A stretch of DNA of 62,984 nucleotides, filler included, from Ministeria vibrans ATCC 50519 (GCA_943704425.1; 5 parts of 5 records of this genome joined end to end with filler, not necessarily neighbours in it), one strand, 5' to 3'; positions 45,901 through 51,788 are shown, numbered from the whole stretch's first letter. Translations and numbers: made by a program. The notes: a model not told the origin generated them from the sequence alone.

Positions 45901-48900
45901 AAGATGAGTCCGTCGATGTAGTAATCACGAACACCCAGGGCCTCTTGTACATGCTCGAGCAGGTTAATGCACGAGCGGTGCCACTGGTTGTCGGCCGTGA
46001 CGCCCCAGTCGGCAATGATGGGATAGCTGTATGTTGTGCACTGGGGCTGAGTAAGAGCAATGGAGTACCACACGGAGGTGGGGTACTTGAAGTGGATAAG
46101 CATGTTGGCCGAGGTGTCCTCAGGAATCTTGTAGGAGATGCACCAGTAGGGGTTGCCGTCGAGGTTGACTCCGTTGGACCATTGTCCCGTGGTACTCTCA
46201 AACGTAGTCGTCTCAAAGTCCCGTCCGCCGGGATTCGGAAAGTACAGAGAGTAGTTGCCACTTGCTGCGGTCGTCGTCTGGATCACTGGATCAACGTTGC
46301 CCTGTGAAGAAATGCCATTCGCCCGTGCACTCCAGTCGTCAGGCGACCCAGGACCCGCCTCAAACGTGTCACGCTCGTAGTACACGGCCGACGCAGAGAA
46401 GTCGTCAATGTGAAACTCACCGGTGTACGCAATGTCAGTCAGTCCGCCAGGGTTGCCAAAAGCAATGTTGGTAATGACATGCGATTTGCGCCCGAGTGAC
46501 GCGTCGAGCTGTGCGTCAAGATCAATGCAGCGGTAGTGCCATGCACCGTCGTTCAAGAGTGGTGCCCACGTAGCCTTGCGAGGGTACGCATTTCCCTCGT
46601 CTGAGGTCATGCCCACACTCAGACGCCCTTCGCCCACCACATCAATGAGCATGTTGGTCTTCACGGCCGCACCAATGCGATAGGCCATGCACAAGTACTG
46701 GTAAATCTTCGTGTCAAAGCCCGTTGCGGTGCGCAACGTGCCAATGGCGTCACCCGAGGACAATTTCATAGAGGCAACACCACGGAACGACGTGGTCGTG
46801 TCCTGTACCACCGTCGTCTCACCCGTGCCGGGCGTCCACACGTCTTCGGGGTTCTCAAACAAATCGAGGACATAATTGGCGCTACTAATGCTAAAGTCGT
46901 CGATCCAGAAGCCACCGCTCACCGTCACGTTCTGGCGCGCCTGGAATGAAATTTCCGTAATGGTAAAAGAGGTCGTAGTCTCGCGCGCAAAAGTGCGACG
47001 CAACTCACGATGCAAGTCAACACACGTGTAGTGCCACTTGTTGTCCAGGTGAAGATTGCCCCACGATGCACCCACTGGTCCGTACGTGGCAGACGACGTT
47101 GGTGTGGAGGCGACTGTCGGATAGATGCCAGGCGTCAGAGGCATGCTGATCCACTGTGACTCGGACGAGACGTACATGACCATGGTGGCCACCGTGGTGG
47201 GCGGAATCTTGTAGGCCATACAGATGTAGGGGTAAGTAAGCACATTGAACGAGCTAGGCTGGTACGGCTCGAGATAGCCACTCTTGAAAACGATGCCTCC
47301 CGACGAGACGGGCATGTAGAGGGAGTAGACACCATTGTAGGCGGTCGCATTGGTGATCGTGGGCGTCACGTCGTTGCTGGCGGCCCATTGGTCCATCGAG
47401 CCAGGACCACCCTCAAAGTCGTCCGCATCAAAGAAGCGGTTTCCAACGCCCATGTTCTCCTCGTAAATGACTCGCGAGTCAGCAATGTCCACGTCCGAGC
47501 CCACAATGGGTGAGCCCACCAACGAACCGACCGGTTGCGCCTCGGCAACGGATGCCGCTGACGCCCCTGGCATAACTGGTGGCGAGCCCTGAGTGAGCAC
47601 ATTGATGGTGACCGTGGCCGCTCCCTGCTGGCCGGCAGAGCGTACTCGTACAAGCACCTCGTACTTCTTCTGCACCGCACCATCCAGCTCAGCATCGGCA
47701 CGCAACCGCATCTGACCATCCGTATCCAGACTAAACGGAGTGTTCTCCGACACAAGCTCCCATGTGAAAGGTGTCACCCACTGCGAGACGTATTCCTTGC
47801 GCGAGAGCTCCACCTGCGGCTCGGGCACACTCGAAATGGAGAAGTCGTCAATCCAGAATCCCGTCGAGTACGACGCGTCTGTGGTATCGTCGGTGTTGCC
47901 CGGATGGAAGCGAATGCCGCTCACAACGTGCATAACAGTGCCAAAGTTGATGTCGAGGTACGCGTCAATGTCAATGCATCGGTAGTGCCACTTGTCGTCG
48001 TCGTACACTTCGCGCCAGGTGCCCTTGGCCGTGTACAGCGAGGGTGAAGCAGACTCGGTCATGGTGATAGAGTACCACGTTCCGCCTGCCAGCTGCACCA
48101 GCATGTTGGTTTTGGCACCCGTCGGAATGCGATAGGCCATACACATGTATGGGTAGGTGTTGGTGTCGAATCCTGAGTGGAACTGGTCCGACTCGGGCGT
48201 GAACATTGCCCACGAACCACCCGACAGGTAGAGCGAGTGATTGCCACTGAACGCAGTGTCANNNNNNNNNNNNNNNNNNNNNNNNNNNNNNNNNNNNNNN
48301 NNNNNNNNNNNNNNNNNNNNNNNNNNNNNNNNNNNNNNNNNNNNNNNNNNNNNNNNNNNNNNNNNNNNNNNNNNNNNNNNNNNNNNNNNNNNNNNNNNNN
48401 NNNNNNNNNNNNNNNNNNNNNNNNNNNNNNNNNNNNNNNNNNNNNNNNNNNNNNNNNNNNNNNNNNNNNNNNNNNNNNNNNNNNNNNNNNNNNNNNNNNN
48501 NNNNNNNNNNNNNNNNNNNNNNNNNNNNNNNNNNNNNNNNNNNNNNNNNNNNNNNNNNNNNNNNNNNNNNNNNNNNNNNNNCTTGATGAGTCCCTGCATA
48601 CCTTCGGGCACACTGTCCACGCACACATGCTCGCCACGGTACTGGCTATATGCCGGACTCATAGCCATGCCAGCGTACGCGCGGCGGTAGCCTAAAGGAA
48701 AGAAATTCATGAGAAATGTGACGCGAAAAATATTGGAAAACAATCAATAGTGTACCGGCTGGACAGAAGGAACTGCCCCATTGCACAAATACACTTGATG
48801 CCGTTGTCTGACAAACAGTGCACGCTGCAACAATCCCATCCACATCCTTGTACTGCTGATCGCTGTACGTCGAAGTGCGGTACTCAGTGGGATAGATCAT

Positions 48901-51788
48901 GGAGTGGCCGTTGTTCGTGTCGGTGTAGAGGGGCGAGTCGCTAGGCGAAAACTTGTATTGCGCATCGGGGTGCATGCACAAGGTGTTTGCGCCGTTTCCA
49001 GTGTAACTCGAATACGAGCCGGCCGTAAAACCCGAGTACACAGCCGTGTCCTGAGACGGACAGCTGCGCTTGCCCCAGCGTACATAGGTCGGACCTTGAG
49101 ACGAGGTACACTGGCTGCAGGGCACGTCACGGTTCACGCGGTACCCTTGACCAGGGTACACAGGCCACACGGTGCGGTCAAATTCGGTCGTGTACAGATA
49201 CGCAACGGTGCTATCCGAGCTGGAGCTACCTTTAGGCTCAACCATTGCATTCACATCGATACAGGCATACTCGGATTTGCTGTGGGTATAGTAGGATGAG
49301 GCGAGGAAACCGCTGTACTCGGTGGTCATGCTCGTGGGACAGGTGAGACGACCGGGGACCATGATGCTTGTGCGACGGCCTCCACCAGCCTGACAGACTG
49401 CACAGGGAGCGTCGTAGTTGTTGATAGACGCCCATGTCTGCACATTCGAGAGTTGGTACTCCACCCGACGTATCAGACCCGACGATTGCTTCCCACTCTT
49501 GGGAGCATCCCACTCAGCATTCTCGCCATACGGCAAGCACAGGTAGTTGCTGCCACCGCCGCGTCCCCACGAGGTCGAGGTGGAATCAGGCGAGTGCGCC
49601 ATGATACCTGCGCGGAGGAGCGTACCGTCCGACGGGCAGTCCTGGCGACCCCATCGCTCGTAGATGGCACCAGGATTGGTCTTGGGATCCGACTCGCACA
49701 TGGCACACGTCGCCTCGTAGTAGCTGGGATACGTTTGCACGTCAATCTCCTGCGGATACAGCAACGAGTAGGACGTCGCCGACGACTGAGTCCAGTCAGC
49801 TGCGACCGAGTCCTTGTCGGCGCACACATAGTCGAGTTTGTACTGTGACATGTGGGAGGACATCAGGAAGCCAGCATAGGCAACCAAGAAGTTGTTGGGG
49901 CACGACTGCTGACCGGGATTCATGTAGACATCCGAGGCACTCGTGCGACACACGACACACGGCAGCTGCTTGTTGTTCACGTCCGACAGTGTCGTTCCAT
50001 AGCTGGTGGACGTTGAAAATTCAAGGAGGTACAGCATTTGCACCGAAGATGTGCCTGACACGTCAATGTTGTCAAACGAAGGATCGCCAGACAGACACAC
50101 GCTGTTGACACCGCCGCCCGAATAGGTGGAATACGAGCCGGCACCGTAGCCGGCGTACACCTCAGTGGTGCCGGGAGGGCAAGAACCCGATGGCTTGCCC
50201 CAGTGCACAAACACATCACTCTGGCCGGTCACGGAGCTTCCACCGCGCACTTCGATGGTCACGATTGCGATTGTCGATAGACTTCCACTTATCGCTTGAA
50301 CCTCCATCGCGTACGAGGGCTGACGCAGTGCGTCCATTGTGCCATTCATCACAACCGAGAATTGACCGCTGGAGCTCAAGGCAAACACTCCATTGCTCGG
50401 GTCGTTCAAGAGTGAGTAGGTGATGCCAGGCGCCCACGTTGCTGCATTTTCTGCACGCGTCAAGTACACCATGGGGTTTGGCATGGTTGAAATGGAGAAG
50501 TCGTCAATCCAGAAGTGACCACTGAGCCAGTCTGAGTTGCCCGTGTGGTAGCCCGAGTGGAAAATTACACTGTTGATGGTGTGGGTGCCCGTGCCAAGAG
50601 ACGCGTCCAGCTGTCCGTCAAGGTCAAGGCATCGGTAGTGCCACTGGTCGTCGTCAATGACCTTGTTCCAGCCGGCGACACGCGCATACGAAGTGGGTGC
50701 GTAACCCTCGGTCATGGTGATGCTGCGCCAGTTGTTCACCTCTGTAATATAAACCAGCATGTTGGCAATGGTGCCCGGCGGAAGGCGGTAGGCCATGCAC
50801 ATGTACGGGTAGGTGTTAGTGTCAAAGCCAGCTGACGTCTGGTTCGCCTCAAGGATGTTGACAGACTGCCCTTCAAAGTTGCGTCCCCATCCACTCTCGA
50901 GACGAAGCGAATAGTCACCGCGGAAGGCCGTCGTCGACACGACAGTGGGGTTCTCAAACTCACGCTGGGTCCAGGCATCCGCGCCACCAGGTCCATCTTC
51001 AAAAGTATCCAGATCGTAGAAGACACCACTAAGCAGATGAGGCACCTCGTCGGGATCAACCGCCTCGAGTGGTTTTCCCACAATTGTGCCAATGGGTGCC
51101 GACTCATCCACATTAAGTGTGGTCACCGGGAAGATGGGGGGTTCGTCGACAAGCTGATCGCACTGGGCACAGCTGAGCTCGTAGTACAGCGGATAGGCGT
51201 TGTCGTTGGTGGTGACGGGAGCGCGTGACTCAGTAGGGTACAGGTAGGAGGATCCCTGATTGCCCGGTTGCGAGTTAGGCGCGATTTCTGCATCACGATC
51301 GACGCAAATAGTCTCCTGTGCCGAGCTCTGTTGGTATGCATTGGTCATCAAATAGCCATTGTAGGCGCTCTTGTAGCCCACAGGGCAGATTGATGAGCCA
51401 GGTTGCATCAAAGTCGAGGGCGACGGCGACTCGCACACGACACAAGGCACTTCACCACCACTGAGCGCACGGAAGTCGGCCGTGTTGATACCCGATGTTG
51501 ACGTAACATATTCGGTGCGGAACATGCGAGCGCGATTGTTGTTACTGTCGCTTTCGTACTGTGTGGAGTTATAGTAACGTGCGTTGTCGGGCAAGCACAT
51601 GTACTGCGAACCACTGCCGGAGTCTGAAAAGTAACTGCCGGCCGTCCATCCCTTGTAGACGACCTTCGCGTTGCCTGGACACGTCCGCTTGCCCCATCGT
51701 GTGTACGTGGGGTTCACAGTTGAACTTGACATAACCACACAGGGCAGTTCGCGGTTGATCACGTAGTTTGAACCTAGCGGCGCCAAAT
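39979..51788 (-). CDS. Giant cadherin-domain protein (both ends missing) with at least 4 spongin/short-chain-collagen-C4 NC1-like domains, 5 jelly-roll/CBM-like inserts and about 18 or more cadherin repeats
   Basis: ORFs 48646-51786 and 39927-48743 join in frame via a 64-nt GT-AG intron (48692-48755). Cadherin Ca2+ motifs xE, AxDxD, LDYE/LDFE and DxNDxP/NxNEAP repeat throughout. Three internal N-gaps. Confidence 0.9.

Follow-up and report, generated by a model that had tools for sequence, protein, structure and literature searches.

Spongin-type NC1-like domains in tandem triplets within a giant cadherin-family gene of probable protist origin

The window analyzed here is a 62,984-nucleotide stretch in which five records of the Ministeria vibrans ATCC 50519 genome (GCA_943704425.1) are joined end to end with filler. 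The piece of it that is usable for the gene in question spans positions 39979-51788, and its minus strand carries part of a single giant gene (39981..51786) in which copies of a domain resembling the NC1 domain of collagen IV occur together with cadherin repeats. Among the inventions held to have founded animal tissues are collagen IV and its spongin variant, whose NC1 domain selects chains and joins networks. We consider it probable that the gene encodes the membrane-distal part of a giant (>6000 amino acids) cadherin-family protein of a protist, with NC1-like domains arranged in triplets, each of which likely forms a ring from a single chain. A first-pass annotation, made from the sequence alone, had described a cadherin bearing tandem spongin-like domains; the organization in triplets and predicted rings, as well as a wider distribution outside animals, are new points that make the region richer than that description.

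Positions 48649-51786 of the minus strand translate to an open frame of 1046 amino acids. The four repeat starts quoted in the first-pass annotation were all recovered in this translation, namely YTRWGKRTCP at residue 28 (nucleotide 51705), FVHWGKPSGSCP at residue 526 (nucleotide 50211), YERWGRQDCP at residue 709 (nucleotide 49662), and YVRWGKRSCP at residue 901 (nucleotide 49086). ENA contains two metagenome contigs of sister samples that match the piece at 99% identity: L001 (ERZ23497376, SCHR19-1_SAMN09406036 scaffold_450, 10,654 nucleotides) and L007 (ERZ23497041, 7,552 nucleotides). On L001 the gene continues 6,445 nucleotides further upstream, past the piece edge, and the 18 residues with which the piece begins prove to close one more copy, the one whose tail the annotation had counted as a fifth.

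All of these copies lie on the minus strand. The edge tail (51733..51786) belongs to T3b, the middle domain of triplet 3, whose remainder is beyond the piece edge and which is found whole at L001 5977-6507. It is followed by R1 (T3c, the last domain of triplet 3; 51154..51708), which contains eight Cys, by R2 (T4a; 49690..50214), located by motif, alignment, and profile mapping, and by R3 (T4b; 49102..49665), the copy that was modelled and searched singly. The first subdomain of R4 (T4c) and the start of its second run to an exon end (48756..49089), and the remainder of the second subdomain follows at 48480..48691. This last segment ends inside a masked stretch (48262-48581) that is covered by L001:9536-9754, which translates to ...CVD...LYIVE...CAVCE. 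The five copies of the annotation are thus present, but they belong to two triplets rather than to one run, and the fourth is split by a 64-nucleotide intron before entering masked N. The window copies are ~180 amino acids long and share 28-31% pairwise identity, with an invariant W, G, CP, C-L, E, PCxVC, and second CP.

R3 alone, searched against 5.8 billion proteins, matches a 'short-chain collagen C4-like' protein of the clam Ruditapes (E 5e-17, 35% identity), and upstream copies on L001 that were left out of profile building score E 1e-21 to 1e-45; by these measures the repeats are not a product of chance. Look-ups in the language-model atlas lead to the same short-chain collagen C4-like clusters. 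A first profile, built from three window copies and six matches, retrieves 4283 of 1.84 billion cluster representatives. Gly-X-Y runs occur in 24 of the 166 proteins taken (the 150 best matches, the earlier matches, and cluster members) and, in those examined, lie N-terminal to the NC1-like domain; proteins of Branchiostoma and the 'short-chain collagen C4-like' protein of Ptychodera are among these true short-chain collagens. Collagen-bearing family members score ~1e-55 in the profile search. Judged from their sequences, the repeats are homologous to the domain with which spongin-type short-chain collagens end C-terminally. The identity first proposed for them is therefore upheld by the R3 search, by a profile that leads to Gly-X-Y collagens, and by structural matches exclusively to collagen IV NC1, described below. 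The accompanying statement that the protein has no collagen helix also holds, in that a Gly-X-Y run of at least five is absent from every coding-strand frame of L001 and the piece (~18 kb).

Models of the domain point to the fold of collagen IV NC1. The AlphaFold model of R3, with a predicted local distance difference test score (pLDDT) of 87 and a predicted template modelling score (pTM) of 0.84, matched only collagen IV NC1 chains in Foldseek, at probability 1.0. Its best alignment in VIA was to 1t60_G (Z 7.9, root mean square deviation (rmsd) 5.1 Å, 152/189 residues), all 41 chains with Z of at least 5 were collagen IV NC1, and the next other fold reached Z 2.1. The two halves of the domain are mutually homologous, as in NC1 (hhalign 99.3%, E 3.5e-20), and each ~180-residue domain is, on this comparison, an internal duplication of two ~90-residue subdomains. 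A profile of four copies run against PDB sequences gave only a chance galectin match, while a 51-sequence profile placed collagen IV NC1 first (E 0.004), with collagen IV accounting for six of its eight matches and with the CP-G-Y-G and CAVCE motifs aligned.

Several observations count against this assignment. Pfam, including C4 (PF01413), gives no match even at E 10 for the 1046-residue region, for single copies, or for the animal C4-like proteins, and the sequence similarity to collagen IV is marginal. Furthermore, the domain of the window gene has eight conserved Cys, four per half, where collagen IV NC1 has 12, six per subdomain, and the HSQ motif of collagen IV NC1 is absent, its position reading RWG or HWG in all copies. 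One could then propose that the resemblance is convergent, the family being related only to a spongin domain that is itself unrelated to NC1; the failure of Pfam C4 on window copies and animal proteins alike would agree with this, as would the Z of 7.9, which falls in the 'middling' range of VIA. However, convergence would have to explain why every structural match above Z 5 is NC1, why the profile search independently puts collagen IV first, and why the two-subdomain duplication and the predicted trimer geometry are the same. Published work on spongins also already concludes that spongin NC1 and collagen IV NC1 are related (PMC5395295, citing Aouacheria 2006). Convergence is accordingly regarded as improbable, and by the models the family and collagen IV NC1 have a common fold.

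Profile mapping over L001 and the piece locates ~12 domains, which fall into four triplets. Inside a triplet the linkers are 4-13 amino acids long, while the spacers between triplets measure 313-344 amino acids and are cadherin-like and carbohydrate-binding module (CBM)-like. After the fourth triplet the order is one further spacer, three tandem CBM-like domains, and a cadherin array. Among the retrieved proteins, three full domains are found in 33, four in three, and five, six (3+3), and nine (3+3+3) in one each, and most of the two-domain proteins are visibly truncated fragments. None of the retrieved multi-domain proteins has a Gly-X-Y collagen run, and their domains come nearly always in threes. 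The NC1-like domains of the gene, not preceded by a collagen helix, sit as four covalent triplets in a cadherin-family protein.

The intron-free triplet of the gene (L001:5392-7086), whose last domain is R1 of the window, was modelled with 30 aligned triplet proteins. The five models are concordant (pLDDT 85.7, pTM 0.91), and the best PDB matches in Foldseek are three engineered single-chain collagen IV NC1 trimers (E 1e-13). In VIA these structures (8txn, 6mpx, and 6wku) align with the model end to end over 426-437 residues (Z 11.6, 11.1, and 10.9, rmsd 4.3-4.8 Å), and single NC1 chains cover one third of it at Z 5. The pseudo-trimer suggested for three tandem repeats is thus supported at the level of prediction, with a pTM of 0.91 and Z ~11 to single-chain NC1 trimers. 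Most likely, the triplet folds as a closed six-subdomain ring, as does the NC1 trimer, but from one chain. Each triplet of the gene would then adopt the quaternary arrangement of the three-chain collagen IV NC1 trimer, and the 'oligomerisation module' of the first-pass annotation is better read, again as a prediction, as an intramolecular pseudo-trimer.

Two points temper the ring: it is a prediction only, and before VIA refinement Foldseek reported a template modelling score of ~0.5 and an rmsd of 10-12 Å for the triplet. It could be argued that the tandem domains are independent beads, each binding or trimerizing with other molecules, and that the ring is an artefact of AlphaFold, which can over-pack homologous repeats and here worked from an alignment of only 30 sequences. 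Separate beads, however, do not readily account for copy numbers of three, six, and nine or for linkers that are short within a triplet and long from one triplet to the next. In addition, the five models agree at a pTM of 0.91, and the model superposes rigidly on real NC1 trimers over ~430 residues. Independent beads are therefore held to be unlikely, and the single-chain ring is retained as the preferred arrangement.

A tree of the domains, with moderate supports and an unknown root, bears on how the triplets arose. The middle domains of the gene's four triplets group together, near the middle domains of the relatives P0008, P0007, and others, which indicates that whole triplets were duplicated. 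Some other relatives show grouping of the three domains by protein and not by triplet position, so the triplet is not demonstrably one ancient invention.

The extent of the gene was read from open frames and from the two contigs. The minus strand is open over the whole piece in one frame, with the sole exception of a frame change near 48700, which is the 64-nucleotide intron at 48755..48692. The exon 51786->48756 precedes this intron, and the exon 48691->39981 follows it, open across three N stretches (42610-42995, 44215-44601, and 48262-48581). These N runs are masks and not assembly gaps, because the reading frame is kept across all of them and because the first (48262-48581) matches contig sequence base for base: L001 and L007 supply real sequence there, of exactly the length of the mask. 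L007 further provides an uninterrupted frame of 1398 amino acids that bridges the masked stretch and joins the last NC1-like domain to the cadherin region. Altogether the gene exceeds 18 kb and is open at both ends, the piece edges cutting it on either side. The plus strand of the piece holds short antisense open reading frames only, which rules out plus-strand genes.

Three GT-AG introns sit inside NC1-like domains. Two are on L001, at 2149-2219 (71 nucleotides, GTACGT...TATAG) and 4893-4960 (68 nucleotides, GTAAGT...TTTAG), and the third is the minus-strand intron of R4 at 48692..48755 (64 nucleotides, GTACAC...CCTTTAG). The last was read from the sequence; its removal restores the R4 motif CPAG|YRRAYAGMAM...CVD, and the R4 exons were handled separately and by reference to L001. 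All three introns start GTA(C/A)(G/A/C)(T/C), finish with TAG after a long pyrimidine tract, and are much richer in AT than the exons of the gene, whose GC content is ~57%. Because such introns interrupt the domains, the gene is eukaryotic, and a prokaryotic origin is ruled out.

The eukaryote in question is probably a protist and not an animal. Animal origin is disfavored because the introns are few and short, because the Cys pattern is that of the triplet-bearing relatives, and because the nearest architectures are protist or environmental. Of 108 single-domain family members, 87 have an extra Cys pair (profile columns 158 and 163); the single-domain or collagen-bearing members that could be identified are animal. 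It is missing from all nine scored copies of the gene and from nearly all triplet domains, and is also absent in Choanoeca, Bicosta, and Ancoracysta. A contig derived from a metazoan in the sample, either a contaminant or a small invertebrate with an odd gene related to short-chain collagens, would be the obvious alternative, given that the family is very large in invertebrates, that short introns occur in some animals, and that a mollusc protein is known with four tandem domains and no collagen. Set against this are the small number of introns (only three, of 64-71 nucleotides, in the ~10.6 kb of L001, with no visible frame break in a further 7.6 kb), the GC content of the exons, the missing Cys pair, and the fact that the nearest triplet architectures belong to choanoflagellates and environmental contigs. 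We judge a metazoan source very improbable, and take the protist origin forward. A choanoflagellate or other holozoan, the condition that the first-pass annotation set on its inference, has about even odds, with a protist of some other lineage only slightly less likely.

The mollusc protein is P0009 of Tegillarca granosa (KAJ8311703.1), with 824 amino acids, approximately four tandem copies, and no Gly-X-Y run detected; collagen-free tandem arrays therefore exist in animals too. Both of its scorable copies have the extra Cys pair that is typical of single-domain members.

Relatives with triplets are found in several kinds of protein. Choanoeca perplexa encodes a 3949-residue protein (EukProt EP00045 P018407) with a signal peptide, nine domains, TNFR repeats, and one transmembrane helix, and a relative in Bicosta minor has three domains and a transmembrane helix. 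Three proteins of Ancoracysta twista (P0015, P0017, and P0021) are built of MACPF, EGF, and one C-terminal triplet. The Ancoracysta transcriptome may contain prey or culture contamination. The same MACPF-EGF-triplet build is weakly indicated in the P0018 cluster from JGI metagenomes, where the MACPF match (E 5e-4) is just below the Pfam cut-off. Far down the Foldseek list appears the three-fold pseudo-symmetric APC-beta domain of apicomplexan perforin-like proteins, at a low probability of 0.15-0.25.

Other environmental relatives are receptor-like: behind the triplets they have ephrin-receptor-like and TNFR repeats, then a transmembrane helix and SH2 domains. One of them, L010 (JGI 3300028097 Ga0255261_1000064), is an intron-free 11.5-kb open reading frame with two triplets, TNFR/ephrin-receptor-like repeats, a transmembrane helix, and SH2. 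P0007, P0008, and P0022 are type I membrane proteins that have one transmembrane helix, and their triplets lie on its N-terminal, extracellular side. A second organism's gene, on L008 (GCA_025491055.1, JAOQFC010008119.1, 1-5556), has the super-repeat of the window gene (CBM-like/cadherin spacer, triplet, spacer, triplet) at 35-53% identity. Its protein match shows gaps of ~65-90 nucleotides where the window gene has no intron, probably additional short introns. A triplet-bearing protein is also encoded on L009 (TARA_SAMEA6001571 scaffold_9947), from Tara Oceans. For the window gene itself, the placement of this region as membrane-distal has one point to its disadvantage, namely that the C-terminal end of the gene, with the transmembrane helix and tail, is beyond the piece, the frame running off at 39981. 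No overlapping contig was found that carries the gene further downstream, and an exact look-up of its product gave no match.

This distribution requires revising the statement of the first-pass annotation that the domain is known mainly from animals, since relatives occur in two choanoflagellates and in the non-holozoan Ancoracysta. Spongins have been called animal-restricted (PMC5395295; PMC5560861; 10.1101/2021.10.08.463732), and NC1 was reported absent from 22 choanoflagellate proteomes in a survey based on InterPro/Pfam (10.1101/2021.10.08.463732). Such surveys relied on the InterPro/Pfam C4 models, by which the spongin-type branch is missed. In the limited literature searched, no report of the family outside animals was found, which is not proof of absence.

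The segments that separate the triplets are composite. In the spacer 50215..51153 (minus strand), a CBM-like beta-sandwich (50485-51024) ending in FWIDDFSIS lies between the seeming halves of one cadherin repeat, and the C-terminal flank gives a weak Pfam Cadherin match (E 0.0066). From its sequence, the CBM-like domain looks as if it is nested in a cadherin repeat, between the first two strands and the rest. The minus-strand segment 45825..48341 contains the fifth spacer and then three tandem CBM-like domains (46881-47435, 46386-46874, and 45825-46385), with cadherin-like segments between, and another CBM-like domain is located at L001:9893-10417. This domain is ~180 amino acids long, is not annotated by Pfam, carries the motifs TYPYxCMAYRIP...WHYRCIDLD...FWIDDFSIS, and is present in at least seven copies in the gene, of which five align. 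Its profile matches the xylan-binding CBM22 of 1dyo (E 0.002), and atlas look-alikes are CBM or galactose-binding-like clusters; a word search with the block matched environmental proteins. The CBM assignment is weak.

Downstream of these domains is a cadherin repeat array (39981..45824, minus strand) with at least 11 repeats by Pfam, which runs off the piece. Pfam Cadherin (PF00028) is matched in three blocks in the same frame (E 1e-17, 1e-22, and 3.9e-106, the last with eight stretches), and the last 300 amino acids match only cadherins in JGI metagenomes, at 29-34% identity. The fusion to a cadherin that had been proposed is confirmed by these blocks together with L007. Repeats in 39981-42608 resemble cadherin-domain proteins from bacterial metagenome-assembled genomes (33-38%; Gammaproteobacteria, Planctomycetes, and Poribacteria) and animal FAT/protocadherins (27-32%), and also match the Pfam 'bacterial cadherin-like' model. 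A word search with the cadherin block gave no more than 39% identity, to cadherins of bacterial metagenome-assembled genomes and of animals alike. Because the two are about equally similar, the cadherin repeats carry no taxonomic signal.

What the rings do can be approached through this context. They are pictured as rigid, disulfide-stabilized caps that would bind a partner, either a foreign ligand or a second cap docked head-to-head in the manner of the collagen IV hexamer. A surface protein for adhesion or capture would carry them alongside the carbohydrate-binding-like modules. A rival reading gives the triplet ring mainly a role in target recognition, lectin-like or membrane-binding, and not in self-association, which would make the cadherin a device for capturing prey or substrate. 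The triplet is C-terminal of MACPF in the three Ancoracysta twista proteins (and, weakly, in P0018), the usual position of a targeting domain; it alternates with CBM-like modules in the gene; and in receptor-like relatives it occupies the distal N-terminus, ahead of TNFR/ephrin-receptor-like repeats, transmembrane helix, and SH2. However, the fold has been characterized functionally only in collagen IV NC1, where it serves to select chains and to associate head-to-head, and the CBM assignment is weak at E 0.002. Target recognition is a serious possibility, to which we give somewhat less than even weight.

It seems that NC1, with which animals build basement membranes, was used earlier for something else. 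As a speculation that we would put forward only tentatively, the covalent triplet could be the older state of NC1, a six-subdomain ring that evolved as a single-chain extracellular binding module of surface receptors, cadherins, and MACPF proteins in unicellular eukaryotes. Animals or their immediate ancestors would later have reduced it to one domain per chain. Placed behind a Gly-X-Y stretch, such domains would have had to reassemble the ring out of three chains, and this requirement would have turned into the means by which the collagen IV or spongin triple helix is selected, registered, and nucleated. The pre-metazoan claim depends on the identity of the host and on a rooted phylogeny.

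Several consequences follow for the study of the family. A profile derived from the window finds the spongin-type branch in two choanoflagellates, one non-holozoan predator, and many environmental eukaryote-like contigs, and so supplies candidates for the 'NC1 in protein without collagen' postulated earlier (bioRxiv 10.1101/2021.10.08.463732; PMC5395295). Current domain models miss a family of more than 4000 cluster representatives. The natural single-chain NC1 trimer is a concrete structural idea that can be tested, and Choanoeca is an organism in which localization could be studied.

With respect to known systems, the cadherins of choanoflagellates and early animals (MBCDH; lefftyrin, coherin, and hedgling) are likewise very large and combine long arrays with unrelated extracellular modules. 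No report of an NC1-like or CBM-like module in these cadherins was found in the searched literature. Lefftyrin, coherin, and hedgling are defined by their membrane-proximal and cytoplasmic parts, whereas the equivalent parts of the gene lie beyond the piece. Other NC1-type domains outside canonical collagen IV or outside animals are the stand-alone NC1 gene of ctenophores and the collagen+NC1 protein MvCN of Ministeria vibrans, which have been used to argue that NC1 predates collagen IV (PMC5395295; PMC5560861; bioRxiv 10.1101/2021.10.08.463732). These match InterPro/Pfam C4 and are single units, while the family of the gene belongs to the spongin-type branch, goes undetected by C4, and occurs as triplets in cadherin, receptor-like, and MACPF proteins.

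The spongin-type short-chain collagens, such as the Ephydatia 'short-chain collagen C4' (PMC5395295; Aouacheria et al. 2006), have a homologous C-terminal domain of ~180 amino acids. Spongins and the gene have in common the motifs RWG-CP, GGG-N-LCL, EY, PCAVC, CP-G-Y-GYLM, and CVD, and both are without the HSQ motif, the criterion used in PMC5395295. Unlike the gene, spongins consist of a Gly-X-Y helix with one C-terminal domain; the gene has no Gly-X-Y, and its domains are internal, number at least 12, and form covalent triplets. Additionally, single-domain members of the family mostly have the extra Cys pair, whereas the gene is without it and does not appear to come from an animal.

Collagen IV NC1 trimers and hexamers (1li1, 1m3d, 1t60, 5nax) have the same fold with two subdomains, and their six-subdomain ring is the arrangement that is predicted for the triplet. 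They differ in having 12 Cys, the HSQ motif, and a Pfam C4 match, where the domains of the gene have eight Cys, no HSQ, and no C4 match. The collagen IV hexamer is a head-to-head, chloride-dependent assembly with a Met-Hyl sulfilimine cross-link. Its NC1 trimer is made of three chains and that of the gene would be made of one, so that neither chain selection nor triple-helix nucleation would be needed. The nearest structural counterparts are the engineered single-chain NC1 trimers (6mpx, 6wku, and 8txn), in which three NC1 domains joined by short linkers form a ring from one polypeptide, and with which the triplet model aligns. Those proteins are laboratory constructs derived from animal collagen IV, whereas the triplets of the gene are natural, ~110 residues shorter, and 13-15% identical to them.

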